DNA of 64,000 bases, from the sequence record MF360958.1. One strand, 5' to 3'. Under the pieces are notes generated by a model that searched no databases, had not been told where the DNA came from, and saw only the letters and a list, made by a program, of their open reading frames with translations. Both the position numbers and the translations under genes were made by a program. Shown here piece after piece: positions 5,366 through 55,104 of this stretch (positions are counted from its first letter, which is position 1; the number at the start of each line of letters is the position of its first letter).

Positions 5366-5680
5366 TCAACAATCATCCTTAGAACAGTTATTATGATTTT
5401 GTGCAATCTTATTTTCATTAAGTCTTAATGACTCAAAAGAACTTTTGCAAATTTGATTTATTGTTTGTTTATCATAATAACTGACATGATTTGGGTTAAG
5501 ATATATCATTCCTTGATTTTGCGTATCAGTTACTAATACAAAACTACCTTTAATTTTATTGATTAAATGACCATTATTATTAATAAGAACATTATTTTTG
5601 ATGTTAATATATAATCCGTCTTCATTTTCATCAATATCTACATATTCCATTAATTTTAATAGTTTTTCATAATTATCCAT
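5366..5680 (-). CDS. Hypothetical protein (start revised to ATG 5680, MDNYEKLL)
   Basis: Directly follows the stop of the 5685-6035 gene; the ORF-track start at 5740 overlaps that gene. Confidence 0.6.
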   Translation of the reverse strand: MDNYEKLLKLMEYVDIDENEDGLYINIKNNVLINNNGHLINKIKGSFVLVTDTQNQGMIYLNPNHVSYYDKQTINQICKSSFESLRLNENKIAQNHNNCSKDDC

Positions 5681-5684
5681 AGCA

Positions 5685-6035
5685 TTACTCTTTATTATTT
5701 TTAATAATATCAATATATTGTTTTTCAAATTGATTATCAATCTTAAAAACAGTTAAAATTTCAGATGATGTTTTATCAAAAGAAAATTGTTTATCATTAG
5801 ATGTTGTTTTATAGATAGGTTCTAATTCAATTTTATTTCTCAAGCGTACTTGAGCTTTACTTCCATTACTAACGCAATGAACTATATATGGATTAGATAA
5901 TGTTATTACTGTTTTAGCAAATTCAGGATTTTGAGGTACATTATAAATACCAACATATTCTGTCATATCTCTAAATTTAATACATATAACATCACCTTCC
6001 TGCAATTGGCTTGTATTTTGTTTTTGTTGTAACAT
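5685..6035 (-). CDS. Hypothetical protein, possible Sm-like beta-barrel
   Basis: GDVICIKF...EYVG....ITLSNPYIV pattern recalls phage Sm-like domains; fold is tentative. Confidence 0.5.
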   Translation of the reverse strand: MLQQKQNTSQLQEGDVICIKFRDMTEYVGIYNVPQNPEFAKTVITLSNPYIVHCVSNGSKAQVRLRNKIELEPIYKTTSNDKQFSFDKTSSEILTVFKIDNQFEKQYIDIIKNNKE

Positions 6036-6056: not shown

Positions 6057-6359
6057 TTATTCTTCCTCAATTTCAATTTTAAAGTTTGGGTATCCATATT
6101 GAGCCATAAATTCGTGTGCTTGATCAACTTTATTTTTAACATACTTGTAACTTGATTTAAGAACAACTTCATAACCATTATTATGTACATTATATGTAAT
6201 TTCTTTTGCATCTCCTTCAGTTTTACTAAAAATTTTAATCAACATATTTATTACTAGATTAAATGGAGTATGGTTATCATTGTAAATTACAGCAATATAC
6301 ATTTTAGGTGATGTAACTAAAAGATCGATATTTTCTTTTACACTAGTTTGATCAGACAT
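6057..6359 (-). CDS. clpS: ClpS N-end-rule adaptor homolog
   Basis: YIAVIYNDNHTPFNLVINMLIKIF...AKEITYNVHNNG matches the ClpS NDDxTP...F...A..VH..G core. Confidence 0.85.
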   Translation of the reverse strand: MSDQTSVKENIDLLVTSPKMYIAVIYNDNHTPFNLVINMLIKIFSKTEGDAKEITYNVHNNGYEVVLKSSYKYVKNKVDQAHEFMAQYGYPNFKIEIEEE

Positions 6360-6453
6360 TCTTTTCGCTCCTAATATTCTTTATCGTGATTCATCCAGAC
6401 ATTATACACAATCTGGATGAATATTCAACAACTATTATTTTAATTTTTTCCAT

Positions 6454-6714
6454 TTAATTTTCATAAAAACGACGAAGATGCTCTTGTTCTTTTTGTTTTT
6501 CTTTCTTATGTCGTGCTATAGCTTTTTTCTTTTTTCGTTTTTTCAAATCTGATGGTTTTTCATAGTACATTTTTTCTGAAAATGCTTTCAAACGCCCATC
6601 TTCATCTACTTTTTTCTTAAATTTTTTCAAGGCAGAATCGACATTATCATTTTTAACTTCTACTTTACAACCTTTAATTTTAACAGGTTCATTTTTATAA
6701 TTATTTCTTCGCAT
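6454..6714 (-). CDS. rpsU: Ribosomal protein bS21 (start revised to ATG 6714, GGAGG RBS)
   Basis: VEVKNDNVDSALKKFKKKVDEDGRLKAFSEKMYYEKPSDLKKRKKKKAIAR is the S21 signature. Confidence 0.9.
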   Translation of the reverse strand: MRRNNYKNEPVKIKGCKVEVKNDNVDSALKKFKKKVDEDGRLKAFSEKMYYEKPSDLKKRKKKKAIARHKKEKQKEQEHLRRFYEN

Positions 6715-6730
6715 TTTTCCTCCAAAGATT

Positions 6731-7945
6731 TTAATTGCTTTCTTCAATTCTATTCATTTTTTTCTGATTTTTATACTTAAAACGAGGCGATAGATCTTGA
6801 TAACTTTTATTTTTAGTAAATTGAATAGAACTAACGCCTTTTTCTTTAAGATGTTCTATATTAAATTGTATATCTTCAAGAACATTCTCAAATATTTTAC
6901 GAATTCCTCTCACACCAGTATTGCCTTCAGAAGCTTTATGTGCTATAAATTCTATCGCCTTATTATCAAAAGTCAAGTTTATACCGTCCATTTTAAATAA
7001 TTTTTGATATTGTCTCAATACACTATTATCTGGTTCTGTTATAACTCGCTTCAAATCTTCATTATCTAATTTATGAGTGTGGGTTATTACAGGAAAACGC
7101 CCTATAAGTTCAGGAATTAAACCATAAACATTGAGATCTTCATCATTTACCTCTTTATAAATTTCTTGCATATTAACATTATTTTTCTGTGTTTTATATC
7201 CTATCTTCTTTGTTTTCAATCTTTCTTCAATAATATCTTTTATATCAACAAACGCTCCACCGCCTATAAATAAAATATTAGTTGTATCAATTACAACATC
7301 TTTATCAACTTTTACTTCCTTACCTTCCAACAATTTAAGCATACTAGTCTGTACGCTTTCACCGCCTACATCTTTTCCTGAACTTGGTGATTTTGATTTT
7401 TTCTTTTTATCAAGTTCATCAAAAAATATAATTCCTTTTTCAGCAATTTTTTTGTCGTTGTTAGCCTTTTTGTAAAGCTCCACAACGGCATTATCTACAC
7501 TCTCACCCATATACCCATCTGAAGTCATTACAGAAGTATCTACAATACTCAGAGGAACGTCTATATATTCTGCTATAGTTTTAAGTAAAGCAGTTTTACC
7601 TGTCCCACTTTCACCCATAATCATTATATTACTTTTCTCAACATTTTTTTGTTCTGATTTGGGCATACGGAGTCGTTTGTAATGATTTCGTACTGCTACA
7701 GAAAGTGTTTTTTTAGCATTATATTGAGAAATAATATACTTATCAAGATAATTAACAATATCCTCAGTTGTTGGGATAGAAGATAAATTACAATTTCCAG
7801 ACATAACAGATGATACTCTCATATCATGCATTCTATCAATACAATCTCCGCAAATAAATATTGATTGTTTCTCGGTATTTTCGTTATTGATTTCCATAAA
7901 AAAATCAATATCTTGTTTTGTGTTTTTACAGCTTACGCAGAACAT
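6731..7945 (-). CDS. clpX: ClpX AAA+ unfoldase
   Basis: N-terminal CxxC...CxxC zinc domain, KSNIMIMGESGTGKT Walker A, GYMG pore loop, IIFFDELDK Walker B, IGY ClpP-docking loop, PELIGRFPV. Confidence 0.93.
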   Translation of the reverse strand: MFCVSCKNTKQDIDFFMEINNENTEKQSIFICGDCIDRMHDMRVSSVMSGNCNLSSIPTTEDIVNYLDKYIISQYNAKKTLSVAVRNHYKRLRMPKSEQKNVEKSNIMIMGESGTGKTALLKTIAEYIDVPLSIVDTSVMTSDGYMGESVDNAVVELYKKANNDKKIAEKGIIFFDELDKKKKSKSPSSGKDVGGESVQTSMLKLLEGKEVKVDKDVVIDTTNILFIGGGAFVDIKDIIEERLKTKKIGYKTQKNNVNMQEIYKEVNDEDLNVYGLIPELIGRFPVITHTHKLDNEDLKRVITEPDNSVLRQYQKLFKMDGINLTFDNKAIEFIAHKASEGNTGVRGIRKIFENVLEDIQFNIEHLKEKGVSSIQFTKNKSYQDLSPRFKYKNQKKMNRIEESN

Positions 7946-15617: not shown

Positions 15618-16628
15618 ATGGATGAACTCGATAAGCTCCGTCAAAAACTACAAAACAATCCTGCGAACCAAGAAGGCCAACGCCAAAACAACAGCAATGG
15701 TCTATATCCATTCTGGAATACACCAGTTGATACAACTGTTACATTACGTTTTCTACCTGATGCAGATGAAGATAACATTATGTTCTGGCGTGAACGTCAA
15801 ATCATTTCTATCCCTTTTGCAAGTGTTGAAGGTCATCCTGAAATGGAGGATGTGATTGTTCAAGTACCATGTGTAAAGATGTATGGTAAGAATGAAAAAT
15901 GTCCTATCAATGAAGAAACGAAAGCGTGGTGGAAAACTGATAAAGAAGATTATGCGCGTCGTTATTGGCCCAAGAAAACTTATCTTTATCAAGGATTTGT
16001 GCGTTCTTCAGGATTTGATGAAGAAAATCCTCCTGAAAATCCAATTCGCCGTTTTGTAATGAATAAAAACATTCATTCCATGATCGAAGCATCCATTCTC
16101 GATCCAGAGATGGAACATATGCCTACAGATTATGATAACGGTACGGATTTTAAAATTGTAAAACGTCAAGGTCCAAAATATGCGGATTACAGTACATCGT
16201 CTTTCGCACGTAAAGAATCACCACTAACTGATGATGAGCGCAAGGCAATTGACGAGTTTGGCCTTTATGATCTTGGATCATTCCTACCTAAGCGTCCTAC
16301 AGAAGACGAACTCAATGTGATGTATCAAATGTTTGTTGAATCACTAAAAGATTCTCAGTCTGTATTCCGTCTGGAATGGGCAAACTATTATCGCCCTCGT
16401 GGTGTAGATCTTGATATGAGCAAAGTTCCAAACGCTGGTGCTAGTGAATCTCTGAAAGGCAATGAGTCTGTTGCTAACGTCACAACAGAATCCACTCAAA
16501 AGTCTGAACCAGAACCTGAGCCAGAACCTGAACCTGCTCAAAAGGCTCCTGAGCCTGAAGCTGATAATGGCGGTGGTAGTGATACAGACGATATTGTAGC
16601 ACAACTTAAAAATAGAATTAATAAGTAA
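15618..16628 (+). CDS. gp32: Single-stranded DNA-binding protein, gp32-like
   Basis: YPFWN...LRFLPD, VQVPC..MYG..CPI, YW.KK.YLYQGFV, YADYSTS.F; acidic EP-repeat C-terminal tail. Confidence 0.9.
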   Translation: MDELDKLRQKLQNNPANQEGQRQNNSNGLYPFWNTPVDTTVTLRFLPDADEDNIMFWRERQIISIPFASVEGHPEMEDVIVQVPCVKMYGKNEKCPINEETKAWWKTDKEDYARRYWPKKTYLYQGFVRSSGFDEENPPENPIRRFVMNKNIHSMIEASILDPEMEHMPTDYDNGTDFKIVKRQGPKYADYSTSSFARKESPLTDDERKAIDEFGLYDLGSFLPKRPTEDELNVMYQMFVESLKDSQSVFRLEWANYYRPRGVDLDMSKVPNAGASESLKGNESVANVTTESTQKSEPEPEPEPEPAQKAPEPEADNGGGSDTDDIVAQLKNRINK

Positions 16629-16643
16629 TTAAGAGAAAAGAAT

Positions 16644-16669
16644 AATATCCCCACGACTGTGGGGATATT
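16644..16669 (+). terminator. Hairpin/terminator between gp32 and uvsX
   Basis: AATATCCCCAC-GACT-GTGGGGATATT followed by TT and the uvsX GGAGG RBS. Confidence 0.7.
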
Positions 16670-16684
16670 TTGGAGGATTTTATT

Positions 16685-18655
16685 ATGAGAAAACCAGTCG
16701 ATATGACAAAGTTTGCATCGTCTGTGACAAAGAAAATGAATGTAAGTCACGGCTTTAATGATCCGCATGTATGGATCAGTACCGGAAATTTCATTCTCAA
16801 TTATCTTATTTCAGGCGATTTTAATAAAGGTGTACCTTTAAGCAAAGTAACAATGTTTGCCGGAGATAGTGGGTGTTTACCAGAAGATGCTATTGTAAAT
16901 GTCCGGTTTTGCAAGAAAAATTTATTTGTAAAGAACCATGCAAAACAAATGACTGTAAAAGAACTTAAAGAACTATATAATTCAGGAGAATATGATATAG
17001 AACTGGAAACACCCGATGGTTGGCAATCTGTTACTGAGTGGTTTGATAAAGGCTTACTTGATATGGTAACTATTCAAACTGAAAATTTTTCCACTAGATG
17101 CGCTGTAAATCATCTTATTCAAAATTCTAATGATGAATGGATAAAAGCTGAAAACCTTAACGTTGGTGATAAGATACAAACGGTTATAGGTGTTGAAGAA
17201 GTTTGTAGTGTAGAATTAATGAATGAAAAAGAAAATTGTTATGACTTCACAATAGACCATCCAAATCATCGTTATTTTGGCGACGGTATTGTTTCCCACA
17301 ATAGCGGTAAATCGTTCATCGCTTCCGGTAAAATTGTTAAGAACTGTCAGGATCGCGGCATTATGCCCGTTATTTTTGATTCTGAAAACGCTTTGGATGA
17401 ACAATGGCTTAAAGACCTTGGGGTAGATACCGATCCTGAAAAACTTCTTCGTTTCCAAGTGTCTATGATTAATGATGTTGGGAAGATCATGTCTGAATTC
17501 ATTGAAATGTATCGTAAAGAATACATGGACCTTCCTAAAGAAGAACAGCCATGTTTCATGTTTATTGTGGATTCTCTTGGTATGCTTCTTACTGAAACAG
17601 ATGTTGATCAATTCGACAAAGGCGACATGAAAGGTGATATGGGTCGCAAACCTAAACAACTTAACGCACTTGTACGTAATGTAGTTAACCAAGTTGCTGA
17701 TAAAAATATTGGTGTTGTATTCACAAACCATACATATGCATCTCAGGATATATTTGACCCGGACGATAAGATAAGTGGTGGTTGTCTTGTAGCAGATACC
17801 GATATTCTCACGGATAATGGTATAAAATCTATTCAAGATTTTGAAGTAGGAGATAAAGTTCTTTCTAGTGATGGTCAATATCATGATGTAATTCAAACTT
17901 GGCATTATCAGAAAGAAACTTATGAAATAGAACTCGAAGATGGAACTGTATTTGAATGTTCTCCTGAACATAAGTTTCTTGTAAAAGATGATAATAATGA
18001 ACAAGTTTGGAAAGAGATTCAGATAATGTCAGAAAATGATGTTGTTTATACCTATTCTGAAAATAAATTAGTTTTAAAAGTAAAATCTATAACAAAAACT
18101 AATAATATTAAAGATGTCTATGATATTCAAGTTGAAGATACTGGCGAGTATATACTTGCAGATAATAACGTTGTAAGTCATAACTCAGGACAAATTTTCG
18201 CCTCATCTATTGTAGTAGCTTCTAAAAAACTTAAACTTAAAACCGACGATGAAGGTAATAAGACAAGTGAGGTAAATGGTATACGTTCAATGGTTAAAAT
18301 CATGAAGTCTCGTTACGGACGTGCTTATGAAACTGCGAAGTTGAATATTCGTTTCGATAGTGGTCTTGAACCTTATTCTGGTTGTCTTGATTATTTTGAA
18401 AAATTAGGTGTTATTCAACAAGTAGGTAATAAACTACAATATATTGATAAAGATGGTAATGAACATAAACAATTCCGTAAAAAGTTTGAAGCTGATCATG
18501 ATCTTCTTCAAAAAATTATTGATGAATGGGATTATGATAAGTATCGTCTTATTTCTTCAGAACAAGTAGAAAATTCATCTGGTCTAGTTACTGATCAAGA
18601 AAAGGAAGAACTTAAACAAGATAGTGAAGAAAAACCAGAAGATGATAATAGTTAA
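16685..18655 (+). CDS. uvsX: UvsX/RecA recombinase precursor with two inteins (about 379 aa after splicing)
   Basis: WISTGN..LNYLISG, Walker A GDSG|SGKS, FDSENALD, VDSLG, GDMGRK, FTNHTY, SS.VV; start revised to ATG 16685 after GGAGG. Confidence 0.93.
   Translation: MRKPVDMTKFASSVTKKMNVSHGFNDPHVWISTGNFILNYLISGDFNKGVPLSKVTMFAGDSGCLPEDAIVNVRFCKKNLFVKNHAKQMTVKELKELYNSGEYDIELETPDGWQSVTEWFDKGLLDMVTIQTENFSTRCAVNHLIQNSNDEWIKAENLNVGDKIQTVIGVEEVCSVELMNEKENCYDFTIDHPNHRYFGDGIVSHNSGKSFIASGKIVKNCQDRGIMPVIFDSENALDEQWLKDLGVDTDPEKLLRFQVSMINDVGKIMSEFIEMYRKEYMDLPKEEQPCFMFIVDSLGMLLTETDVDQFDKGDMKGDMGRKPKQLNALVRNVVNQVADKNIGVVFTNHTYASQDIFDPDDKISGGCLVADTDILTDNGIKSIQDFEVGDKVLSSDGQYHDVIQTWHYQKETYEIELEDGTVFECSPEHKFLVKDDNNEQVWKEIQIMSENDVVYTYSENKLVLKVKSITKTNNIKDVYDIQVEDTGEYILADNNVVSHNSGQIFASSIVVASKKLKLKTDDEGNKTSEVNGIRSMVKIMKSRYGRAYETAKLNIRFDSGLEPYSGCLDYFEKLGVIQQVGNKLQYIDKDGNEHKQFRKKFEADHDLLQKIIDEWDYDKYRLISSEQVENSSGLVTDQEKEELKQDSEEKPEDDNS
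16874..17302 (+). mobile_element. Mini-intein 1 in UvsX (143 aa), inside the Walker A loop
   Basis: Starts CLPEDA, block B RCAVNH, ends GIVSHN followed by Ser; no endonuclease domain. Confidence 0.92.
17783..18184 (+). mobile_element. Mini-intein 2 in UvsX (134 aa), at the SGG|SGQ (loop L2) site
   Basis: Starts CLVADT, block B CSPEHKF, ends NVVSHN followed by Ser. Confidence 0.92.
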
Positions 18656-29992: not shown

Positions 29993-32077
29993 TTAATAAA
30001 CTGGTAGTGGCGGAACATAATCATCATCTTCGTCATCATCCCCATTACCTGTAATCCCCAACTGATCCATAAATTCATCATCTTCTTTCATCGTTTCCAT
30101 AGCCATTCGTATACAAATTACCATAGCCATAACCAAATCATCATGTTCACCCGTAGATGCCGCATACGTATTCCCACGACGAACAAAATGTTGCATTTGC
30201 TCAAGCAAAGGACGACTGCTAACTTCTAGTTTTTCGTTCTCAACCCAACTCTTTAAACGCATACAAGCAGTATGTTTACTTTCCTTGTTGGTATTATAAC
30301 CTTTACGGAAACGATTTCTTTGCCCCTTGCGCATTGGATTGTAGGGTTCACTCATAAAGTATCCAAAGAAATTGTCTTCACCGTACTCATCAATCAATAC
30401 CAATGGCGCTTCACCAACTGTATTGTTTTCAAGCGTCCAACGAACATTGTCTTCCTCAAATCCAGCTTCTTCAAACATATCCAATATACGTCTAAGTATC
30501 TTCAACTGTTCAGGCACATCACTTTTATTGTGCATCCATTCACCAACCTGAACCATTGTGGGGAATTCAAAAATTTGTATTGCAGAATAATCACCACCTG
30601 TACCCAAACTTGGATCATAACCAATCAGGTAAATATAATCCTTACTTAGTTCTTTGTACCAACGTATTTCGCCCTTACTTTTAGCAATTGGACTTTTCGT
30701 TTCAAGATTAGCCAGCTTTACCGCATTAATGAGTGTTTCTTCTTCTGATATGAATTCTAATTCATGCTCACGTAAGAAATATTCTTCACCGAACTGTCTA
30801 ATCTGATCGTATTTGTATTCTTCATCACGTTCAGGATGTTCATCCCATTTTACCTTCAATGCTTTAAAACCATTCACTCCAACTTCCATATCATTGCCAT
30901 AATCATCAATGGTCTTGTTCGCCAACTTCCACATGTTTGCAAATAGTGTATCATCGGTAGTAGGTGTGGTGGTGATAATACATTTACCACCTGTATTACT
31001 ACCTAAAATACCATTTTGTAAGAATGTATGGGTATGAGGAACCGTGAAATCATATGTAAAGTCTTGATAAGATTTTTCAATACGAGTTATTGTTAACCAT
31101 TGTGTTTCATACTTTTGATTACACTTAAATATTTGAATAGCTTGTTTATTCACACGATATTCATAGTTGAAATTGTTCAACATTTGAACAAATATACTTA
31201 ATGCATGTTCGTTCCATTTTGGAATAATATAACCGCGTGTTTCGATAAATCGATCCAAAGTACGTCTGGTTATGTTCATATAATACTCTGGATTGTTTTC
31301 AAAGTTACGATCTATATCATGAGGACTGACTTCAAGATCCCCTTCAATATTCATACCACGATCAATACGTAAGAACATTCCTGTGTTTAACTGTTCAGCA
31401 GGAATCATTCGTGCATTATCATTAATGTTTCTTCGACTGTATAAAGGATGATCAGGCGTAACTTCAACAATTTGACCATTTTCTAATCGTATTCGATATG
31501 TTTCAGAGGCAGGTGAAACATAACCATGAGAAACATCTTCGATACCACGTTTACCCCAAACCTTGAGATTATCAATCTCGAAATATTCACCAATAGAACG
31601 ATTTTCAAAATAATTGTCTATCTTTTCAAAACCATTGTCGGTCAGAATAATCGTGCCCGGAGCCAAGCATGAAATAGTAGGATAAATGGATGCCCAAAAC
31701 TTTGTCGCAATATTCTTACGGACGAAAGCAAATTCGTCACACTGAGATACATTCCCGCCATTGGCGTATATAGTATTTGAATCGGATTCGTATATATCAT
31801 ACGTATCTTCTAAGAAATCGTATTTTATAGAAGATATCTTTTCATAACCATTGATTGTTTCTATATATTGACCAACGGAAAGATTATAAGCAGGAATTTT
31901 TTCATTATTAATAATGAATTCGTGATCGGTAGTACAATGTATTTCACGATTGGTTTCAGTAGTAATGCGATAGGTATGTTTGTTACTGGATGGATTTTTA
32001 ATAACACCTTTAAAATTCTCCCAACCGTGTTGAGTCTCGATTTCGTATTTGTCATTTTCAATAAAAAACTGATTCAT
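29993..32077 (-). CDS. gp17: Large terminase, C-terminal half (Walker B to nuclease), preceded by a split-intein C-fragment and containing a second intein
   Basis: CDEFAFV Walker B, IITTTP, FLREHELEF, YLIGYDPSLGTGGDYSA, ENN..G, HDDLVMA; no Walker A half in the window; own CATAAATA promoter and GAGGG RBS. Confidence 0.9.
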   Translation of the reverse strand: MNQFFIENDKYEIETQHGWENFKGVIKNPSSNKHTYRITTETNREIHCTTDHEFIINNEKIPAYNLSVGQYIETINGYEKISSIKYDFLEDTYDIYESDSNTIYANGGNVSQCDEFAFVRKNIATKFWASIYPTISCLAPGTIILTDNGFEKIDNYFENRSIGEYFEIDNLKVWGKRGIEDVSHGYVSPASETYRIRLENGQIVEVTPDHPLYSRRNINDNARMIPAEQLNTGMFLRIDRGMNIEGDLEVSPHDIDRNFENNPEYYMNITRRTLDRFIETRGYIIPKWNEHALSIFVQMLNNFNYEYRVNKQAIQIFKCNQKYETQWLTITRIEKSYQDFTYDFTVPHTHTFLQNGILGSNTGGKCIITTTPTTDDTLFANMWKLANKTIDDYGNDMEVGVNGFKALKVKWDEHPERDEEYKYDQIRQFGEEYFLREHELEFISEEETLINAVKLANLETKSPIAKSKGEIRWYKELSKDYIYLIGYDPSLGTGGDYSAIQIFEFPTMVQVGEWMHNKSDVPEQLKILRRILDMFEEAGFEEDNVRWTLENNTVGEAPLVLIDEYGEDNFFGYFMSEPYNPMRKGQRNRFRKGYNTNKESKHTACMRLKSWVENEKLEVSSRPLLEQMQHFVRRGNTYAASTGEHDDLVMAMVICIRMAMETMKEDDEFMDQLGITGNGDDDEDDDYVPPLPVY
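30995..31669 (-). mobile_element. Contiguous intein in TerL (225 aa) with a shrunken endonuclease remnant
   Basis: Starts CLAPGT after YPTIS, block B VTPDHPL, ends YDFTVPHTHTFLQNGILGSN followed by Thr. Confidence 0.9.
31742..32077 (-). mobile_element. Intein C-fragment (112 aa) of an atypically split intein, ending in Gln
   Basis: No block A; has EIETQHGWENFKG, block B CTTDHEF, block F/G YDIYE...YANGGNVSQ followed by Cys. Confidence 0.8.
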
Positions 32078-37530: not shown

Positions 37531-39387
37531 ATGTCAGATACAAAAAATTATGGCATTAGTGGCATTGGCAGTAATGTTGAATTGGGCAAACGTGGCAATC
37601 GATTCAAAAACGAAACTGATAAAATTTCAGTTCGTGATTTTGATGATGCTAACTTTGTTCCTATTTCAGCGGGTGATCCTGTTGGAGATAATGATCTTGT
37701 AACAAAATCATATTTAGAGCAACAGGCTTTTGATCCTACACTTAAATCACCTGATGATGGTGATTTAACAGATGGAGCAGTAACAGATTGGACGGTAGGT
37801 TCTACCACCTATTCCACAGCTATTGATGATCTTAATGGCATTCTAGGCCGTCTGGTTCCAACAGCACCCCCTGAACTTTCTACATTTACTATAAATGCTA
37901 CTAGTGGAAGCAATCAACTATTAGCTCAAAACGCTATTGATAACACAACTAATGCACCAAGTGCGGGTAGCAGTGTTTATACGGTGTTTGATAGCAGTTT
38001 CCAATCAACACAAGCAAATGGTGGAAATGGCGCATTTGGTGGTGATGTAGAAGGTGCAGATGGTAACCTATTTCTTTCAGGTGAAACAGGAACATTATTC
38101 AGTTATGTAAACGGTACTCAAGATGGCTCTATAGTTCTAGATGGAACTGATAATACTGGTACGTATGGTTCATTGGAAGTTCTTTCAGATACAGCTTATC
38201 CAGCAGATACCCCCGGATTCTATACAGCACTAAAAGCTCGTATTAACAAATCTGCGGTAAGCATTGGTTATAATGAGGCATATCTAGAACATTCGGAAAC
38301 TGGATCAACTAATACTGTTTCATGGGTTTATGATGATGTAGCAAATGCTCCTAGTATTTCTAATCAGAGTTATTCATTAGATTCCGCTGTTAGCAAACAA
38401 AGTTCTGGTATCAATCATATGACAGATGGTGATACCTTGAATGTTAGTGCTACAGTAGATAATCTTGTAGGACAAACTTACATTACTGGTACAGTATTAC
38501 GTTTTACTACCGGAGTAGGTGTTGGAACGCTTAACATGGATGCTACCCAACTTGGTACAGGTCTTACATTTCCCCTTGATGCAAATCTAGGCCCTCAAAC
38601 AACGTCAGGTAAAACGCTTTCAATAGCATCAACCGCAACGTTTGATGAAACCGATATTCAAGTACGTGCGTGGAATGCTAATGGTGCTACCGGTTCAAGT
38701 GTAGTTTCCGGCGATCCAGTACTTGTATATACTAGTGCTCTTGAAGGTGGTAACAAGCCTCACGAATCACAAATTAATGGTTCAAGTGCTGATGCATACC
38801 GTTATTATCTAGGTTCCGGTTTTACGGGTGATACGCCTAGTGGAACGTTAGATGCACCTACTACAACCAATTGGGATTCGACACAGCTTCTTAATGCTTC
38901 TGGTTATGAACATGAAGCCGTTACAGTAGCTGGTGTAGTCAAGCATGACACAACCAATTATACTACTGGTTATATCCCTGTCACAACCGGTGCTGATTAT
39001 TCCACAAAAGGAACAGATCAGTATGTAACCTATGTGTTTAACCAATCTACTCTTTCTAGTATAAGTCTTGATATTAGTGGTTCTTACAGTGGTTTATGGG
39101 TAGCACTTCCCGGAATCTCGGATGATGCGGGAATATCACCTAATGCTCTTGGTGGAAATTGGTGGGATGCTTTTGAACTATATAACGGTTCTGGTGCCCC
39201 CGGACGTACAGGCGATAGTTCTGCTGGTTGTGCTGTAGGTTCTGCGGCAAGTGGTTCCAGTGGTACGGTTAACCTAACGTTTGGCACACAATCCACAACA
39301 AACTCTACCAATAATGCGGTGATAGTACGAATTAAGCTAAATGCTGGTGACAGTATTTCAGCACTAAGTATTGGAAACACACCATAA
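37531..39387 (+). CDS. Virion structural protein (fibre/decoration-like; start revised to ATG 37531)
   Basis: AATAAATA late box at 37460; AAGGAG RBS; N-terminal KNYGISGIGSNVELGK; T/G/S/D-rich beta composition. Confidence 0.75.
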   Translation: MSDTKNYGISGIGSNVELGKRGNRFKNETDKISVRDFDDANFVPISAGDPVGDNDLVTKSYLEQQAFDPTLKSPDDGDLTDGAVTDWTVGSTTYSTAIDDLNGILGRLVPTAPPELSTFTINATSGSNQLLAQNAIDNTTNAPSAGSSVYTVFDSSFQSTQANGGNGAFGGDVEGADGNLFLSGETGTLFSYVNGTQDGSIVLDGTDNTGTYGSLEVLSDTAYPADTPGFYTALKARINKSAVSIGYNEAYLEHSETGSTNTVSWVYDDVANAPSISNQSYSLDSAVSKQSSGINHMTDGDTLNVSATVDNLVGQTYITGTVLRFTTGVGVGTLNMDATQLGTGLTFPLDANLGPQTTSGKTLSIASTATFDETDIQVRAWNANGATGSSVVSGDPVLVYTSALEGGNKPHESQINGSSADAYRYYLGSGFTGDTPSGTLDAPTTTNWDSTQLLNASGYEHEAVTVAGVVKHDTTNYTTGYIPVTTGADYSTKGTDQYVTYVFNQSTLSSISLDISGSYSGLWVALPGISDDAGISPNALGGNWWDAFELYNGSGAPGRTGDSSAGCAVGSAASGSSGTVNLTFGTQSTTNSTNNAVIVRIKLNAGDSISALSIGNTP

Positions 39388-39400
39388 GGAGGGATGAATA

Positions 39401-40465
39401 ATGGCGATTAATGATTCAAGTAAACTTGATTTTCTATGGAAAAAAATTCAGTACGGTGTGACCAATACAAGTGTTCTTGGTAAGAATGGTTATGAGGAAA
39501 TATACGGTTCGGAAGTTCCTACATATGCGAACAATATCTGGACGCAATCATCACAAATTCAAAAACCAGCTCCTAATGCGACAACTGGTGTTCATGAATT
39601 TTATGATGCTGCGAATGCTATTGAATGTACTCCCGATCCAACAGTTCCTAATAATCAAACTTGGTTGGTTACAACAACATATGGTGATACAAATACATTA
39701 ACAGGTGATTGGATTCCACCCACATTTGACGCAAGCTATCTTATACAGGTATATGCTGGCGATCCTAATAATGGTGGTGTTGCATTAAACCAAGGCACTA
39801 CTGGAGAGGAATGGGTTTTTGACTATGTGGCTGGTACAGTAACATTCGTCAATAACGTTCCTTCTAGCGTAGGTGATGCTGATAGTAGTGAACGTATCTT
39901 TGTTGTAGGTCATCGTTATGTTGGTTCTAAAGGACTAACCGGTGCAGGTGGTGCGGCAGCTTCTGAAGAAGTAGCTGACATTTCAGAACGTGATGCTCTT
40001 AATCCATCTGTTGGAACTATTGCATTTGTAGTAGATGCATCAGGCGATACTACAAATTCCGCTCATATCGGTGCAAATGAATCTGCTACCTATCTTTATA
40101 CGAGTTCTGGTTGGAGATTACTTTCAACTGAAGATTCAGCAAGAGCGGATGTAGGAACTGTAACCTATATGATAGATACGGCAACAACTAATTCTGTTGT
40201 ATATACGATTCCTGCAAATACAAGGTTAGAAGAAGCAGTAGTTGAAGTACAAACAGCTTTTGATACTACCCCTGTTATTAATGTGGGAGATAGTACAGTT
40301 AATGATCGTATTGTTGCTGATAATCTAGTGGATCTGGAAGAAATTCAGGATTATAAAGTTGAAGTAAACTATCGATACGGTTCTCAAACTGATATACAGA
40401 TAGAGTTTAATCCAAATAGTGCAACACAAGGTTTAGCATATCTTATATTAAAATGGTCATCTTAA
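39401..40465 (+). CDS. Virion structural protein
   Basis: MAINDSSKLDFLWKKIQYG N-terminus typical of T4-like jumbo structural genes; EWVFDYVAGTVTF; C-terminal beta-sandwich. Confidence 0.7.
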   Translation: MAINDSSKLDFLWKKIQYGVTNTSVLGKNGYEEIYGSEVPTYANNIWTQSSQIQKPAPNATTGVHEFYDAANAIECTPDPTVPNNQTWLVTTTYGDTNTLTGDWIPPTFDASYLIQVYAGDPNNGGVALNQGTTGEEWVFDYVAGTVTFVNNVPSSVGDADSSERIFVVGHRYVGSKGLTGAGGAAASEEVADISERDALNPSVGTIAFVVDASGDTTNSAHIGANESATYLYTSSGWRLLSTEDSARADVGTVTYMIDTATTNSVVYTIPANTRLEEAVVEVQTAFDTTPVINVGDSTVNDRIVADNLVDLEEIQDYKVEVNYRYGSQTDIQIEFNPNSATQGLAYLILKWSS

Positions 40466-48967: not shown

Positions 48968-50329
48968 ATGACAATAGCAAAAAGTCAATATTTTTATGAT
49001 AAACAGATTCGTCGTTATTTGCTTCAAGCAATTAGAATGTTCTCGGGATTTTCTGTTTATGATGGTAAAAATAACAACAATGAAGATACATTTAAAATGA
49101 TCCCTTGTACATATGCGGATATGACACGTCTTGGTGCAACCTATTTAAGTAATAATAGTCAGAATATGCTTAATAGCGCACCAAGTATGGCTATTCATGT
49201 TACTGATTTTCAACCATTGCCCGAGTATCGTCATGCACCACATTATGAAGGTAATAGTTATTTCACTCAAAAACAGAAAGACAGTAATGGTAATTATATA
49301 AATAAACCCGGTAAAAAATATCATGTTCAGCAGTTAATGCCTGTTCCTTTCTCGATGACATTGAATTTGGATATATGGACAACCAGTACTGATCAAAAGT
49401 TAGAAATTTTAGAACAATTACTGGTATGGTTTAATCCGGGTTATGAATTTCTAGTAAATTCATCACCTTTTGATATGGGGCGTGTATGTAATATTGAGCT
49501 TGAAAACATTCAATGGACTTCACGAAGTGTTCCAGAATCTACTTCTGTAGAAATTGATATCGCTACATTAACGTTTAAGCTTTATCCAATATTCATCACA
49601 AGTCCGGGAAAAATTATGCGTCAAACACTTATACATAATATTCAAATTAATAATCATCTTACTGAAGATATTTTATCCAACACATTAGATGATATTTTTG
49701 AAAATAATAATATAGAAACAAGTAATATTGTTGTATCGCCTAGTGGGTATAAACTTGAAGTTTATAAAGATAGTGGTGAATATTTTGCACGGTTAGTTAG
49801 CCCTCAGGGTTATGGAAATTGGTCAGAATTATTTGATACTTATGGAGAGGTTGTTGAGAATGAAACTTTCATAAAAATAAGACAATCAGCAGATGCGGAA
49901 GATGACCGTCATGATATATATGCTACTTATGAAAATACCGGTGATGATCAAGTAATAAAACTTAATTTTGATATTGATACATTCCGCCCTACAACAATAG
50001 ATCCAGTTAATAAGATAATAAATCCCAATAATGGTATTCCAAGTGATGCTGAAATTGGTTCTCGATACTTAATAGCTGATGAGATAACAATTGCTGATTG
50101 GGGCATCAACGCTAATATGTGGGATATTATTGAATTGAATAGCAATGGGGATTGGTTTATCGATTTTGACAGCCAGAATGAATCTGAGGTACAATATGTC
50201 AAGAATCTGAAGAGAATGGACCTTTATGTGTTTCTTCCTGAAGACAAAGAATGGATTGCAGCTGTTCTTGGTGTTTACGAGGAAGGATATTGGTTATTCG
50301 ATGTGCAAAAGGTTCAGCCTTGTCAATAA
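48968..50329 (+). CDS. gp15: Tail sheath stabiliser/terminator gp15-like
   Basis: QYFYDKQIRRY..Q.IR.FSGF; MPVPFSM...L.IWT...DQKLEILEQ....FNP. Confidence 0.7.
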   Translation: MTIAKSQYFYDKQIRRYLLQAIRMFSGFSVYDGKNNNNEDTFKMIPCTYADMTRLGATYLSNNSQNMLNSAPSMAIHVTDFQPLPEYRHAPHYEGNSYFTQKQKDSNGNYINKPGKKYHVQQLMPVPFSMTLNLDIWTTSTDQKLEILEQLLVWFNPGYEFLVNSSPFDMGRVCNIELENIQWTSRSVPESTSVEIDIATLTFKLYPIFITSPGKIMRQTLIHNIQINNHLTEDILSNTLDDIFENNNIETSNIVVSPSGYKLEVYKDSGEYFARLVSPQGYGNWSELFDTYGEVVENETFIKIRQSADAEDDRHDIYATYENTGDDQVIKLNFDIDTFRPTTIDPVNKIINPNNGIPSDAEIGSRYLIADEITIADWGINANMWDIIELNSNGDWFIDFDSQNESEVQYVKNLKRMDLYVFLPEDKEWIAAVLGVYEEGYWLFDVQKVQPCQ

Positions 50330-50348
50330 AATAAATTGAGGAAGAAAT

Positions 50349-50768
50349 ATGTCTAAAATGAAAAAGCGATCCGGTTTATTACTTTTTTACATCGCCCCGA
50401 AGTCGGGCGATGTATACTTTCGTTGTATGATCCCTTCTGATGCTAAATACGGTGGTCTTTCCCCTCAGATCCCTAAAGGGCGCATAGAGGAAAACTATAA
50501 TAAGCGCGAAACTGCTATAAAAGAGACACAGGAAGAAGCTGGTTTATTGATTCATAATTTAAAATGGGTATATCATTTTAGAGATTATGAAGACATGAAA
50601 CTCTCTATATTTTATGGTACAGTAGAAAATCCTTCTGACTTTGGTGATTGGGATTGGGAAACAGAATGGTCTGGTTGGGTTAATTTTGATAAACAATCAG
50701 AATACATTCGCGAAACACAGTATCATATATTCAAAGAAGTATATGATCATATTAAAAAGGAACACTAA
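50349..50768 (+). CDS. Nudix hydrolase 1
   Basis: PKGRIEENYNKRETAIKETQEEAGL Nudix box (K in place of the usual R). Confidence 0.8.
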   Translation: MSKMKKRSGLLLFYIAPKSGDVYFRCMIPSDAKYGGLSPQIPKGRIEENYNKRETAIKETQEEAGLLIHNLKWVYHFRDYEDMKLSIFYGTVENPSDFGDWDWETEWSGWVNFDKQSEYIRETQYHIFKEVYDHIKKEH

Positions 50769-51295
50769 TGCGATTAGATAATGTAGATAATGTAGATAAT
50801 GTAGATAGAATTTTATTTGAGAGTGATCCTGACGAAGTTCACCGTCAAGAATTGGAAAAGACCGGTTTTTGGGGGAAGAAAGGAGCGGGATGTTTGTTGT
50901 ATAGTGTACAAACAGATACCTTTTTATTTCTTCAACGTTCTGCTGTCGTAGAACAACCTCATACATGGAATCTTGCAGGTGGTGCTATAGATCCTGAAGA
51001 AAATTCCAAAAAAGCTGCAATTCGAGAGTTATATGAAGAAACACAAATTAATGTTTCGGAACAAAATACCCACCTTATTCATACCTATAAAGATGATAAT
51101 TCATCATTTGTTTTCTTCAATTTTTTAAGTGTTATTGACAATGAGCAACAACCTGTATTAAATTGGGAAAATAAGGATTACGTATGGGAAAGCATTGATA
51201 ATCATCCAGAGCCTTTACACTTTGGTTTAAAAGAATTTTTGTTTGACCAGAAAGTTCTTGAGAAAATCAAAAATATTATTGACAAGTACCAGTAA
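50768..51295 (+). CDS. Nudix hydrolase 2
   Basis: TWNLAGGAIDPEENSKKAAIRELYEETQI Nudix box; leader MRLDNVDNVDNVDRILFE. Confidence 0.88.
   Translation: MRLDNVDNVDNVDRILFESDPDEVHRQELEKTGFWGKKGAGCLLYSVQTDTFLFLQRSAVVEQPHTWNLAGGAIDPEENSKKAAIRELYEETQINVSEQNTHLIHTYKDDNSSFVFFNFLSVIDNEQQPVLNWENKDYVWESIDNHPEPLHFGLKEFLFDQKVLEKIKNIIDKYQ
50775..50801. repeat. 9-bp tandem repeat x3 (TAGATAATG)
   Basis: Encodes DNV repeats in the Nudix 2 leader. Confidence 0.85.
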
Positions 51296-51350
51296 AATCC
51301 TTACACTATAATAAGTAAACTTAACAAACCAATCAAAGAGGTAGTTAGTT

Positions 51351-51596
51351 ATGGATATCACAGCATATACTCGTGGTTACAATCATGGCATCGATACTGT
51401 TGACCGGTATATTTCTGTTCATATTGATCAGAATGAATCTTATGATGAAATCATGGCGAAATATGATGATGAAGCCGAAAAAATGCAAGAACAGGGATTT
51501 CCTGAAGACTATGTGGATGGATATGCGGATGGTTACGAGCAGCGCCTGAAAGAGTACGAAGATGGCGTTGAAGTTGGAAACGCAGTAGCTGGTTAA
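51351..51596 (+). CDS. Small acidic early protein with Y..GY..G repeats
   Basis: TTGACA-N17-TACACT (51279-51307), GAGG RBS. Confidence 0.7.
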   Translation: MDITAYTRGYNHGIDTVDRYISVHIDQNESYDEIMAKYDDEAEKMQEQGFPEDYVDGYADGYEQRLKEYEDGVEVGNAVAG

Positions 51597-51613
51597 CGCA
51601 TACCACTAGATTA

Positions 51614-51642
51614 AATACCACCTTCAAGACGAAGGTGGTATT
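51614..51642 (+). terminator. Hairpin terminator/attenuator
   Basis: AATACCACCTTC-AAGAC-GAAGGTGGTATT. Confidence 0.7.
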
Positions 51643-51678
51643 GTCGTTTCTAATAAATAAAAACTTGGAGAATATAAT

Positions 51679-54213
51679 ATGTCAGTAAAAGCAGAAAAAG
51701 CCGTTAAAAATATGAATGAACATACCATTATGATTAACAACACTCTCTATATTCCTAATAGTGAGATTGTTGATCGAAACCATAAAAAAGCAGCTACTCC
51801 AAGGGCTGTTATGCAACTCGTAGCCGAACTGGCAAACTATGGATTTCTAGTAGATGAACATCTAAAAAATACATTATTCTGTACTAAACATTCTTATCTC
51901 GTTCAAAACCGTGATATTATTCTTAACACTGCGAAATCGGCAAAAGGTGATAATGTTTCTCTCATTCCTCTTTTTGATAAATTCCCTTCTAGTACACCTA
52001 AAAATGATGAATATTATCTTCTTCGTATTATTAGCAAATTTGAAGAACTGTTTGGTATTCAAACCACAGATCGCGTCAAATTATCTTGTGGATGTTCCGT
52101 TAACAAAAATTATTTTGAGATTAATACATTTAACAAATGCCCCGTGTGTCAATGTCATGCAGAAGAGCTTTATACCGAATCAAGCAATTCTCAGGCAATT
52201 GAATCATTAGATAAAAATGATATGCCTGAACCGTTTAGGCTTACTCATTGTGATGAAGACGATCTATATGGGATGATTGAAAGTATTGTAACAAGTACTA
52301 CATCTGTTACTAAATCTTCAAAGCTGTTCTTTATAGATTACATCGCTGATTGCAATAGTTCTGCTTTAAAAGAACTATGTTCAAAATCTATTTATTTTAA
52401 GGATACACTATCTATCATTGCTTATTTTGTTGTTAATAGTCGCGATTTTGATAATAAAGAAAAAGTATCTCTATTAGATAATAATGTTACCAGTGCAAAT
52501 GATATTTTTAGAATTGCGCATACTGTTAATAATCACGAGAGCTATACTTCACAATTCAAATCTGAAAAGAAAAATATCGATATTGATAATAATAGTTTTT
52601 ATATGGTCACTGAAAATAATGACCATATTAATAAAAAATATCCTTTTAAATTTACAAATACATCACGAAAGGTTCTAATGGGTCTTCTGGATACGATCAA
52701 AAATCCTTATGAGGATATGAAATCGAATCGTGAACAATGGCTTCGAATGGCAGAACAAATTCATCCGACATCTGCGGATATGAAAAAGCGTTATTCAAAA
52801 GCAGCGTATGCATTCAAGGTACTTCGTAATGATGAGAAAACTATAAAGTCATTCAACGCAATGATTGATGGTTATTTTGAACAGCTAAAAACCGAAACAG
52901 ATGACATTAGTAACGTTATCTCCATTGCTGAAAAAGCGTTTTGTGAAACATTTACTAAGCGTCCCGGTGTAATGGTTCGTAATATGGACCGTATTCTGCG
53001 CGAGACAGATGCCGCTATGAAGCGCGTACCTAATAATGACAACAGTACTGATCTTATTGGACTCATCCTTGATAGCCTTAAAGGTCATTATCAAGATCTA
53101 GATTTCCGGGGTGTTATTAGCGCACGTGACCATTTTGCAAAGCGTATGGAAGGTGGTGAAGATTACCGAATTTTCTCACCTGCAAAAAGCTCACGTAAGT
53201 TTGTCAAAGAAAGCGAACTAGAAATACTTGATCATGATATTTGTAAACGCGCTATTGAATGTTTTGAGGATATCATTTATCTGAAACTTCGTGATAATAA
53301 AGAACACGATCCTATTGAACAATATTTTGATGGTGACTCTCATACGGGCATTTATATTGATCCAGCGCTTTATAAGGAAAAAATGCCTATCTATCTCAGA
53401 ACTGAGAAAGAAAGCCTTTATGTGATGGAGACATATTCATCAATTGATATCGATTCTAATTATGATGTTGTTCGAGCATTCACGTATTGGGATGAAAATA
53501 AAGATGCTCAAGGTGAAGATAAAGAAAAAAGTAATAACACATTCTTTGATAGTAACCGTGTTGATATTGATCTTTCCATGAAATTGTTTAGTTCAAATTC
53601 AACAAGAGTAGGTGATGTCTGTTCTTATATGGATTTAATAGGTAAAATTGTTGATATGATCCATTCTGGTGACATCCAACAAGGCCCCGGTGCAGAGTTC
53701 ATTGATATTAATATTAATTCAGCTATTAGAAATGATTGCCAATACGGCATTGGATTTATCAATTCTTATACGGGTCAGGCTTTTGATAACTATTATTGCT
53801 TTGCGGGTTTAATGTTCAGAAAATATACAGACACGAACAATAGTTCTAAACGAGAAGCTAAAGGAAAACGTTTTGATATCAATACAGTACATCATAAATT
53901 TGATATCACTGGTGGTTATAACTCAACCATTCCGTATATTCTTGATTTTAAAAATCGAAAAATGATTATTGTGAATTTTAATCAATCATTAAAAATGTTT
54001 TCTAATGTTGAAACCAATGAAAGTAACGAAAGGTTATTCCTGAATCATGCCCTTATTAATGAACGTAATAACATGAGTATTGGTAAATATATGGAATTGT
54101 TTTTAAAAGCTAAAGGGTATGAAGTTTCTAATGAAGAAGCAGACAATACATTAACTATTGATAAAACTCTTGTAGGACATGTTAATCAATTTTCTCAAAC
54201 ATGGATGAGTTAA
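51679..54213 (+). CDS. TerD-domain stress-cluster protein with an N-terminal Cys-rich motif
   Basis: CGC...CPVC; REQWLRMAEQIHP; RPG..R..D..LR; C-terminal VDIDLS...HSGDI..GP.AEFIDI...INSYTGQ.F TerD-like fold. Confidence 0.7.
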   Translation: MSVKAEKAVKNMNEHTIMINNTLYIPNSEIVDRNHKKAATPRAVMQLVAELANYGFLVDEHLKNTLFCTKHSYLVQNRDIILNTAKSAKGDNVSLIPLFDKFPSSTPKNDEYYLLRIISKFEELFGIQTTDRVKLSCGCSVNKNYFEINTFNKCPVCQCHAEELYTESSNSQAIESLDKNDMPEPFRLTHCDEDDLYGMIESIVTSTTSVTKSSKLFFIDYIADCNSSALKELCSKSIYFKDTLSIIAYFVVNSRDFDNKEKVSLLDNNVTSANDIFRIAHTVNNHESYTSQFKSEKKNIDIDNNSFYMVTENNDHINKKYPFKFTNTSRKVLMGLLDTIKNPYEDMKSNREQWLRMAEQIHPTSADMKKRYSKAAYAFKVLRNDEKTIKSFNAMIDGYFEQLKTETDDISNVISIAEKAFCETFTKRPGVMVRNMDRILRETDAAMKRVPNNDNSTDLIGLILDSLKGHYQDLDFRGVISARDHFAKRMEGGEDYRIFSPAKSSRKFVKESELEILDHDICKRAIECFEDIIYLKLRDNKEHDPIEQYFDGDSHTGIYIDPALYKEKMPIYLRTEKESLYVMETYSSIDIDSNYDVVRAFTYWDENKDAQGEDKEKSNNTFFDSNRVDIDLSMKLFSSNSTRVGDVCSYMDLIGKIVDMIHSGDIQQGPGAEFIDININSAIRNDCQYGIGFINSYTGQAFDNYYCFAGLMFRKYTDTNNSSKREAKGKRFDINTVHHKFDITGGYNSTIPYILDFKNRKMIIVNFNQSLKMFSNVETNESNERLFLNHALINERNNMSIGKYMELFLKAKGYEVSNEEADNTLTIDKTLVGHVNQFSQTWMS

Positions 54214-54286
54214 CTTTTAATAGAATGTGATTGACATTTATATAATACTTTAGTTATAATTATATTAGTTAAGTTGGAGAAGAAAC

Positions 54287-54619
54287 ATGAGCTTTTATCT
54301 TATTAAAGATTGTGATAATTCGCAATTTATAGTCGAATCTTCCAATAGTGATGAAAATCAGTTTACTGTCAAAGCTAAAGATATTACGTCTTTGAAAGAA
54401 TTAAATGATACTATTACGAATTCTGAATTTCACAATAGTGATTTTTATCGAGCCACGATTATATCTGAATTTGATATTGAACGACAAAATAAAAGTTATG
54501 AAATTGATGTTTATAATGTAAATATTATAGGATATCAAGTTGTATCTAATGGAATTATTCGCCATTCAAATTTAAGTTCTGATGAAGCCATTTCAGCAGT
54601 TGCATTTTATGCACAGTAA
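54287..54619 (+). CDS. Hypothetical early protein
   Basis: TTGACA box and GGAG RBS upstream. Confidence 0.65.
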   Translation: MSFYLIKDCDNSQFIVESSNSDENQFTVKAKDITSLKELNDTITNSEFHNSDFYRATIISEFDIERQNKSYEIDVYNVNIIGYQVVSNGIIRHSNLSSDEAISAVAFYAQ

Positions 54620-54647
54620 TTTTTTCTAAAAAAATAGTAGAAAGGTG

Positions 54648-54676
54648 TTGACGAGGGTAATATTTATAGATATAAT
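54648..54676 (+). promoter_or_regulatory. Strong early promoter TTGACG-N17-TATAAT with A/T-tract UP element
   Basis: Consensus hexamers, upstream TTTTTCTAAAAAAA tract. Confidence 0.75.
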
Positions 54677-54742
54677 ATTTACAGAATTTGAGGAAAAGCC
54701 CTCAAAAACACCTAAACCAAAATTGTACAGGAGATTGACACT

Positions 54743-55024
54743 ATGACTAACGAAACTACTACTCAAACTGTTACCGCTACTCGCCGTGGTCGTCCGCTTA
54801 GCACTAAGGGCCGTAAAGCACGAAACGCAGTACTTCGCATCCTGAACAGCGAGCAAGGCACACAGGGCGTCACTGCCAAGGACATTGCACGGCAAGGTAA
54901 AATGAGTGCTACAGCAGTGCGTAACCGCCTCAATGCGCTGGAACGTGCTGGTAAAGTGGTAAAGGTCGGTGTACGCAAAAGTGATGGTAAAGGCCGTCCT
55001 CAAGCTGTCTACGTTAAAGCATAA
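54743..55024 (+). CDS. Winged helix-turn-helix DNA-binding protein with GRP (AT-hook-like) ends
   Basis: VLRIL...VTAKDIA....MSATAVRNRLNALERAGKV...GKGRPQAVY; RRGRP; AGGAG RBS; markedly GC-richer than flanks. Confidence 0.85.
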   Translation: MTNETTTQTVTATRRGRPLSTKGRKARNAVLRILNSEQGTQGVTAKDIARQGKMSATAVRNRLNALERAGKVVKVGVRKSDGKGRPQAVYVKA

Positions 55025-55075
55025 AAGGGTTTACTCCTTCTTGCCCGGTTGGTATGCGATGATGTAGACAGTATA

Positions 55076-55104
55076 AAAAGCCCCTCACTTGAGGGGCTTT
55101 TTTA
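55076..55104. terminator. Bidirectional terminator
   Basis: AAAAGCCCCTC-ACTT-GAGGGGCTTTT. Confidence 0.88.

Follow-up and report, generated by a model that had tools for sequence, protein, structure and literature searches.

Salicola phage SCTP-2 encodes a ClpX without the RKH loop tip, beside a ClpA, ClpS and ClpP of its own

Almost all that is known of the specificity of the unfoldase ClpX comes from E. coli, and there the RKH loop counts as a family hallmark. The loop consists of a β-ribbon as its stem, together with a short helix bearing Arg228-Lys229-His230; it is unique to ClpX-family enzymes, and its conversion to AAA in E. coli abolishes the degradation of ssrA substrates (PMC7112951). 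In the recognition complex, the Ala-Ala-COO– end of the ssrA tag is contacted by Arg228 and His230, by Thr199 and Val202 of the pore-2 loop, and by Tyr153 and Val154 of the pore-1 loop (PMC7652416). The same paper quotes the observation that E. coli R228A has a lowered specificity for ssrA and a raised specificity for substrates with an N-terminal degron, and describes human ClpX, in which residues 199 and 230 are both Leu and which degrades ssrA substrates only after grafting of the E. coli loops. ClpP, ClpS, ClpA and ClpX encoded by jumbo phages have already been discussed (Iyer et al. 2021, PMC7824862). Here, we describe the ClpX of Salicola phage SCTP-2 (MF360958.1, 440,001 bp; host Salicola sp. 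PV4; solar saltern), the product of gene 194, which lies on the minus strand with gene 193, encoding the ribosomal protein bS21, and gene 192, encoding the adaptor ClpS. All positions refer to the 64-kb stretch that was analysed (the window), in which a coordinate equals that of MF360958.1 minus 186,000. An initial annotation of this stretch had proposed that a ClpX without the RKH loop docks on host ClpP with redirected specificity, possibly in a new pairing with ClpS. We consider it rather probable that the phage ClpXP has been retuned away from ssrA-type tags, and that it works beside an ordinary phage ClpA–ClpS–ClpP pathway.

The loss of the RKH tip is confirmed. When gene 194 is aligned by phmmer to the ClpX of Pseudomonas (9ndj) and of E. 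coli (8e91), a single clean gap of 10 residues falls at the tip of the RKH loop, across which the phage protein reads ...EGKEVKV-DKDVVIDT.... An artefact of annotation or assembly was considered as the source of the gap and ruled out, since it recurs in 11 independent assemblies. In an AlphaFold2 model built from an alignment of the clade described below (mean predicted local distance difference test score, pLDDT, 72), strands 210–214 and 217–220 are joined by a two-residue turn, such that the RKH ribbon keeps a capped stem and has no tip; the mean pLDDT is 72 over residues 201–210 and 89 over residues 211–220. Other positions that contact the ssrA tag have changed as well: the pore-2 loop is altered at the position of Thr199 (Table 1), and the pore-1 loop has Met at the position of Val154. 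Because the RKH tip is deleted and these pore-loop positions are changed, and given what the literature says of the contacts, we infer that selection of ssrA-type tags has been lost in SCTP-2 ClpX. A redirected specificity, as first proposed, is on these grounds probable; that the new targets are host defence proteins is speculation.

Gene 194 is otherwise recognisably a ClpX with an intact motor. It scores 377.7 bits against NF003745, a curated ClpX equivalog model with a cut-off of 359, and 331.5 bits against TIGR00382, under the cut-off of 370.75, and hence passes one of the two curated ClpX models. In alignments to E. coli ClpX, the Walker A (GESGTGKT) and Walker B (FFDELD) sequences are intact and the Arg-finger and sensor-II contexts are matched by GRFP and GVRGIR; the top Foldseek matches of the AlphaFold2 model are all ClpX (E about 1e-23). 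The ClpP-docking tripeptide is kept too, and gene 194 is predicted to dock on a ClpP. The Walker motifs and the GYMG and IGY loops were correctly called intact at the outset. The zinc domain, also called intact there, gives a mixed picture: its four cysteines are invariant in the clade, the Pfam model zf-C4_ClpX gives no match to the N-terminus, and the AlphaFold2 model has there a small β/α domain at a pLDDT of about 70. The canonical pattern CSFC...LIAG...IC.EC is retained in a related phage clade whose ClpX bears the RKH loop.

The deletion has a single origin and is restricted to viruses. Among the best 120 database matches, gene 194 and its nine closest relatives (41–64% identity, all from metagenome assemblies) share the identical gap, and the remaining 110 of 110 carry GGRKHP. 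Two further members were found in IMG/VR (L017, on a 239-kb contig, and L018), giving 12 sequences, which form one group with a support of 100 in a maximum-likelihood tree. A scan of one genome per species, for 185,579 prokaryote species, gave no sequence of this group from a cellular genome, the best match there having 41% identity. The RKH motif was retained in 50 of the 50 true cellular ClpX sequences recovered from that scan; these, together with the Pseudomonas and E. coli structures, are the basis on which we take RKH to be conserved in the host lineage, and on this basis the loss would not be a common trait of host-lineage ClpX.

The only cellular sequences in the scan without RKH were 30 distant ClpX-like paralogues from Bacillota, mostly of 470–740 residues. 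These RKH-less AAA+ proteins (L104–L134; from metagenome-assembled genomes and isolates of Bacilli, Erysipelotrichaceae and Acidaminococcaceae) have a divergent pore-2 loop and share 30–37% identity with phage ClpX across the ATPase core; they fall outside the SCTP-2 clade. A separate observation concerns a 10.9-kb contig (L055, CAZXGO010000081.1) in a metagenome-assembled genome labelled ‘uncultured Chitinophagales’, the ClpX loop of which has the signature seen in the RKH-bearing clade of phages, …ECRVPVGGGRKHPGHE…; the contig probably stems from a phage and was binned into a bacterial genome.

Other jumbo phages have changed the same loop in other ways. The RKH loop is substituted in the ClpX of PA5oct, where pore-2 is also changed, is six residues shorter in L033 and L037, and reads RKN in Atu_ph07 and Phosso; RKH is kept in phage G and in the Lak phages. 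As judged from these alignments, RKH is altered independently in at least three jumbo-phage lineages besides that of SCTP-2.

This recurrence bears on the suggestion that the loop loss is simply tolerated degeneration in a fast-evolving, AT-rich lineage, with little functional effect, and that ClpX serves as a general helper of host-like proteostasis. The long stem branch of the deletion clade (0.94 + 0.64) would suit such an explanation, as would the unusual divergence, in the SCTP-2 lineage, of the ClpA N-domain and of the ClpS surface. We nevertheless think it unlikely. The deletion is in-frame and precise, and 12 sequences, with identities as low as 41%, have retained it between conserved flanks; two other ssrA-contact positions have changed alongside it, and mutation of RKH in E. 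coli causes strong defects (PMC7112951); to these must be added the independent alterations just described.

SCTP-2 encodes both a ClpP and a ClpA homologue, each outside the window. Gene 122 scores 258 bits against the ClpP model NF001368 (cut-off 249) and 110.6 bits against the head-maturation model NF045542, under the cut-off of 120; ClpP fits it better than do the prohead-protease models. The ClpA homologue, gene 70 (738 residues), matches TIGR02639 over model positions 4–732 (5.4e-219), at 729 bits under a cut-off of 993, and has two AAA+ modules, an IGY ClpP loop and no ClpB middle domain. Amongst the partial genomes of relatives, ClpA was found in four of five and ClpP in three of five. 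Across six complete jumbo phages that have ClpX, the presence of ClpS equals that of ClpA: SCTP-2, PA5oct, Atu_ph07 and Phosso have both (four of four with ClpA), and phage G and Lak-B4 have neither (none of two without it). The SCTP-2 genome contains no second ClpS, no SspB, no L/F-transferase and no transfer-messenger RNA, a search for the last having given just two sub-threshold matches of tRNA size.

Gene 192 is a clear ClpS (69.3 bits against PF02617, cut-off 23). The residues that hold the N-terminus of the substrate in the E. coli protein, N34, D35, T38 and H66, align to N27, D28, T31 and H59, which are invariant in 14 phage ClpS sequences; in SCTP-2, the gate position Met40 is occupied by Phe and the position of Asp36 by Asn.

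Taken together, gene 194 is a phage-lineage ClpX in which the ATPase motor and the ClpP-docking loop have been kept and the substrate-recognition surfaces rebuilt: the RKH entry loop has become a tight hairpin, Thr199 of pore-2 has been lost, the Val of pore-1 relaxed, and the zinc-binding domain has diverged. The protein most likely assembles with the phage ClpP, perhaps with host ClpP too. The resulting ClpXP would not select C-terminal Ala-Ala tags of the ssrA type, and its capacity would go to other substrates chosen by the phage and not to the tagged translation debris of the host. ClpS most likely docks on the N-domain of the gene 70 ClpA, and would feed N-degron substrates to a phage ClpAP. 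Since ClpA and ClpP are encoded in the same genome, there is no need to invoke either a ClpS–ClpX pairing or host ClpP, and both of these earlier proposals have been set aside; a clpS next to clpX had been over-read, for it needs no new partner where the phage brings its own ClpA.

Several points weigh against the proposed retuning and the ordinary ClpA–ClpS pathway beside it. The deletion clade belongs to a fast-evolving lineage on a long stem branch, and loss of RKH might lower the general grip on substrates instead of redirecting specificity. Pfam Clp_N is not detected in SCTP-2 ClpA, the N-domain of which is too divergent; the domain is weak in the ClpA of the clade relative L043 and clear in those of RKH-bearing relatives. 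Further, the residues of E. coli ClpS that dock on ClpA, E79 and E82, are K72 and K75 in SCTP-2 and variable in its subclade, and the E/E pair is kept in the RKH-bearing phage clade. It should be noted that the ClpA-docking surface is patchily conserved amongst genuine ClpS orthologues (bioRxiv 10.1101/2024.06.12.598358), and that the divergence of the ClpS docking residues and of the ClpA N-domain fits a co-divergence of the phage ClpA–ClpS pair.

The same features could be taken to mean that the RKH-less ClpX has become the partner of ClpS, for example via the divergent zinc-binding domain, to give a ClpXP–ClpS machine for N-degrons on host ClpP. In the SCTP-2 subclade, clpX, the bS21 gene and clpS lie close together on one strand, and it is in this subclade that the ClpA-docking residues of ClpS are unconserved and the zinc-binding domain of ClpX is remodelled; the gain of N-terminal degron specificity by E. 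coli R228A (quoted in PMC7652416) points the same way. A re-targeting is, however, very unlikely, given that the phage itself encodes ClpA and ClpP, that ClpS co-occurs with ClpA and not with ClpX in the six jumbo phages, and that relatives in which both the RKH ClpX and the docking residues of ClpS are canonical share the gene block. Nor do we know of any contact between ClpS and ClpX in any system.

A different possibility is that ClpX works for the most part independently of ClpP, as an unfolding or remodelling chaperone in phage processes, of which replication complexes and virion assembly are examples, with recognition loops fitted to phage clients. Translocase or virion-assembly functions have been proposed for the ClpX and ClpA of jumbo phages (Iyer et al. 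2021, PMC7824862), and the position of clpX, which adjoins the subunits of topoisomerase II and lies near a DNA polymerase gene, is compatible with such a role, as is the adjacency of clpX, topoisomerase and IF3 in phage AP-J-162 (PMC11242549). Against it, the IGF-type tripeptide is conserved throughout the clade (as IGF, IGY or FGF); a bona fide ClpP is also retained in SCTP-2 and its relatives. We regard a mainly ClpP-independent function as improbable, and the retuned phage ClpXP as the better account of gene 194.

The three genes form part of a block that is found well beyond SCTP-2. Gene 193 is bS21 by its family models (PF01165, 51.5 bits, cut-off 27; TIGR00030, 50.3 bits, cut-off 28.95); in GenBank, it is labelled a hypothetical protein, and genes 194 and 192 are labelled ClpX and ClpS homologue. 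By tblastn, a homologue of gene 195 precedes ClpX, and bS21 directly follows it, in 22 of 22 related IMG/VR contigs and in Logan/ENA contigs, with ClpS 0–1.6 kb further on in most. The clade with GGRKHP, a canonical zinc-binding domain and a canonical pore-2 accounts for 18 of the 22 contigs, which have the same block of membrane protein, ClpX, bS21 and ClpS; in the RKH-bearing relatives, ClpS lies 0.9–1.6 kb away with other genes between. In PA5oct (L050, 169742–171161), the ClpX and bS21 genes overlap by 14 nt and are followed by Hsp20 and then ClpS, 1.6 kb downstream. The order in Atu_ph07 (L051, 244–2066) and Phosso (L052, 380983–382829) is topoisomerase II, ClpX, IF3. For phage AP-J-162, an adjacency of clpX, topoisomerase and IF3 was described earlier (PMC11242549).

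Since most of the related ClpX–bS21 loci have an RKH-bearing ClpX, the linkage of the genes is independent of the loop loss. The order of ClpX and bS21, with or without ClpS, is by this distribution old and inherited across several jumbo-phage lineages, and did not arise with the deletion. We know of no bacterial operon from which either the ClpX–bS21 or the ClpX–IF3 adjacency was inherited. That ClpX adjoins bS21 (in SCTP-2-like, PA5oct-like and IMG/VR lineages) or IF3 (in Atu_ph07-like phages) in divergent jumbo phages leads to a long shot, namely that phage ClpX, especially where RKH-less, might target the 30S platform, or the bS21 or IF3 of the host, and thereby let the phage factor take over initiation, or else that the ClpS of the subclade has switched to ClpX; we rate this as very improbable. 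The recurrence of the two adjacencies is in itself a lead on a joint takeover of translation and proteolysis by giant phages.

The coordinates of the features are collected in Table 1. The minus-strand run comprises, in order, the large subunit of topoisomerase II (gene 197), a gp52-like subunit (196), gene 195, clpX, the bS21 gene, clpS, and genes 191 and 190, after which a baseplate-hub-like gene lies on the opposite strand. The gaps are of 17 nt between clpX and the bS21 gene and of 94 nt between the latter and clpS. The first of these follows from the annotated ATG of bS21 at 6714; an alternative TTG at 6747, the start used for this frame in the initial annotation, would overlap clpX. A scan for promoters and terminators gave no terminator-like site between clpX, the bS21 gene and clpS on the minus strand and one promoter-like site at 6428–6401, inside the gap between bS21 and ClpS. 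Such sites occur in this AT-rich DNA at the frequency expected by chance and the promoter scan therefore says little about an operon; co-transcription of the three genes is plausible from their arrangement. The background G + C content is 0.27–0.30, with local rises to 0.34–0.41 at 16001–18000, 30001–32000, 38001–40000 and 50001–56000, and no tRNA genes were found in the window.

Table 1. Position of the clpX, bS21 and clpS genes of SCTP-2, of sites within clpX and of flanking genes (window coordinates).
Feature	Position	Strand	Evidence or remark
Gene 195, viral membrane and coiled-coil protein, 365 residues	8017..9114	-	Directly upstream of clpX; DUF4407-like lead
Gene 194, ClpX homologue, 404 residues	6731..7945	-	NF003745 6.8e-113; best PDB and Foldseek matches all ClpX
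N-terminal C4 zinc-ribbon region of ClpX (C3, C6, C32, C35)	7841..7939	-	Four Cys invariant in the clade; rest diverged from the canonical domain
Pore-1 loop of ClpX, GYMG	7505..7516	-	Tyr invariant; position of Val154 is M, T, C or V across the clade
Pore-2 loop region of ClpX, residues 186–196	7358..7390	-	Gly at position of Thr199; one residue shorter; RKH-bearing ClpX read SITRDVSGEGV
Short β-hairpin in place of the RKH loop, residues 209–220	7286..7321	-	Alignment gap; AlphaFold2 model
IGY at the position of the IGF (ClpP-docking) loop	7196..7204	-	Gly invariant; clade reads IGF, IGY or FGF
Gene 193, bS21 homologue	6454..6714	-	PF01165 8e-14; TIGR00030 1.6e-13; phrog_21469 ‘ribosomal protein S21’ 1.7e-15
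Gene 192, ClpS adaptor homologue, 100 residues	6057..6359	-	PF02617 2.5e-19; aligns to E. coli and Caulobacter ClpS structures
Genes 191 and 190, two small open reading frames closing the same-strand block	5366..6035	-	Kept in close relatives only

Some observations on the surrounding genes may be added. Gene 195 belongs to no Pfam or PHROG family and has an Atlas feature score of 0.96 to viral ‘DUF4407’ clusters; a functional association with ClpX is possible. Gene 191 (5685–6035, minus strand) is weakly linked by the Atlas to viral Sm-like/DUF6561 clusters (feature score 0.85–0.88, TM 0.62–0.67), which, as a lead only, would put an RNA-binding fold beside bS21. In two relatives of SCTP-2 (L002:1-1312 and L006:14925-16506), Pfam gives faint hints of inteins or homing-endonuclease inserts in a RecA/UvsX-like gene and a family-B DNA polymerase.

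What the SCTP-2 clade offers is a natural lineage of ClpX, found only in viruses, in which the loop tip has been cleanly removed and both the motor and a cognate ClpP have been kept. Together with the otherwise altered jumbo-phage lineages, it provides a comparative series with which to ask how far RKH is needed and what a phage gains from blindness to ssrA.

Compared with bacterial ClpX (E. coli and Pseudomonas; 8e91 and 9ndj), the SCTP-2 protein has the same domain order and fold at 35–40% identity, and shares the Walker motifs, the pore-1 Tyr, the Arg-finger and sensor-II contexts, an IGF-type loop and the four cysteines of a C4 zinc ribbon. It differs from them in the 10 missing residues of the RKH tip, in a pore-2 loop that is one residue shorter with no equivalent of Thr199, in Met for Val in pore-1, and in its failure to score with zf-C4_ClpX or to reach the TIGR00382 cut-off. 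Human mitochondrial ClpX, likewise a natural ClpX that differs at the positions of Thr199 and His230, is the best functional analogue for a change of degron driven by the entry loops; the human loop is, however, of normal length with substitutions, whereas the SCTP-2 loop has had its tip removed, and the two have no specific common descent, the aligned part covering query residues 101–255 only.

The ClpS–ClpA pair of E. coli is matched in the ClpS core fold family, in the equivalents of N34, D35, T38 and H66, in an N-terminal extension of about 16 residues, and in the presence, within one genome, of a two-ring, ClpA-type partner that has an IGL-type loop. SCTP-2 departs from it with Phe for Met40, Asn for Asp36 and Lys for E79 and E82, and from the E. 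coli N-degron system as a whole in a ClpA N-domain that Pfam does not recognise and in doing without L/F-transferase and SspB. Closest amongst viruses are the Clp sets of the PA5oct/MIJ3 group, of Atu_ph07 and of Phosso/AP-J-162, which also comprise a ClpX, ClpA and ClpS of the phage’s own and in which RKH is again altered, by substitution in PA5oct and to RKN in Atu_ph07 and Phosso. Unlike these, the SCTP-2 subclade forms a ClpX lineage of its own with good support, marked by a clean deletion of 10 residues, by a remodelled zinc-binding domain and by a ClpS gene that stands immediately after that of bS21.

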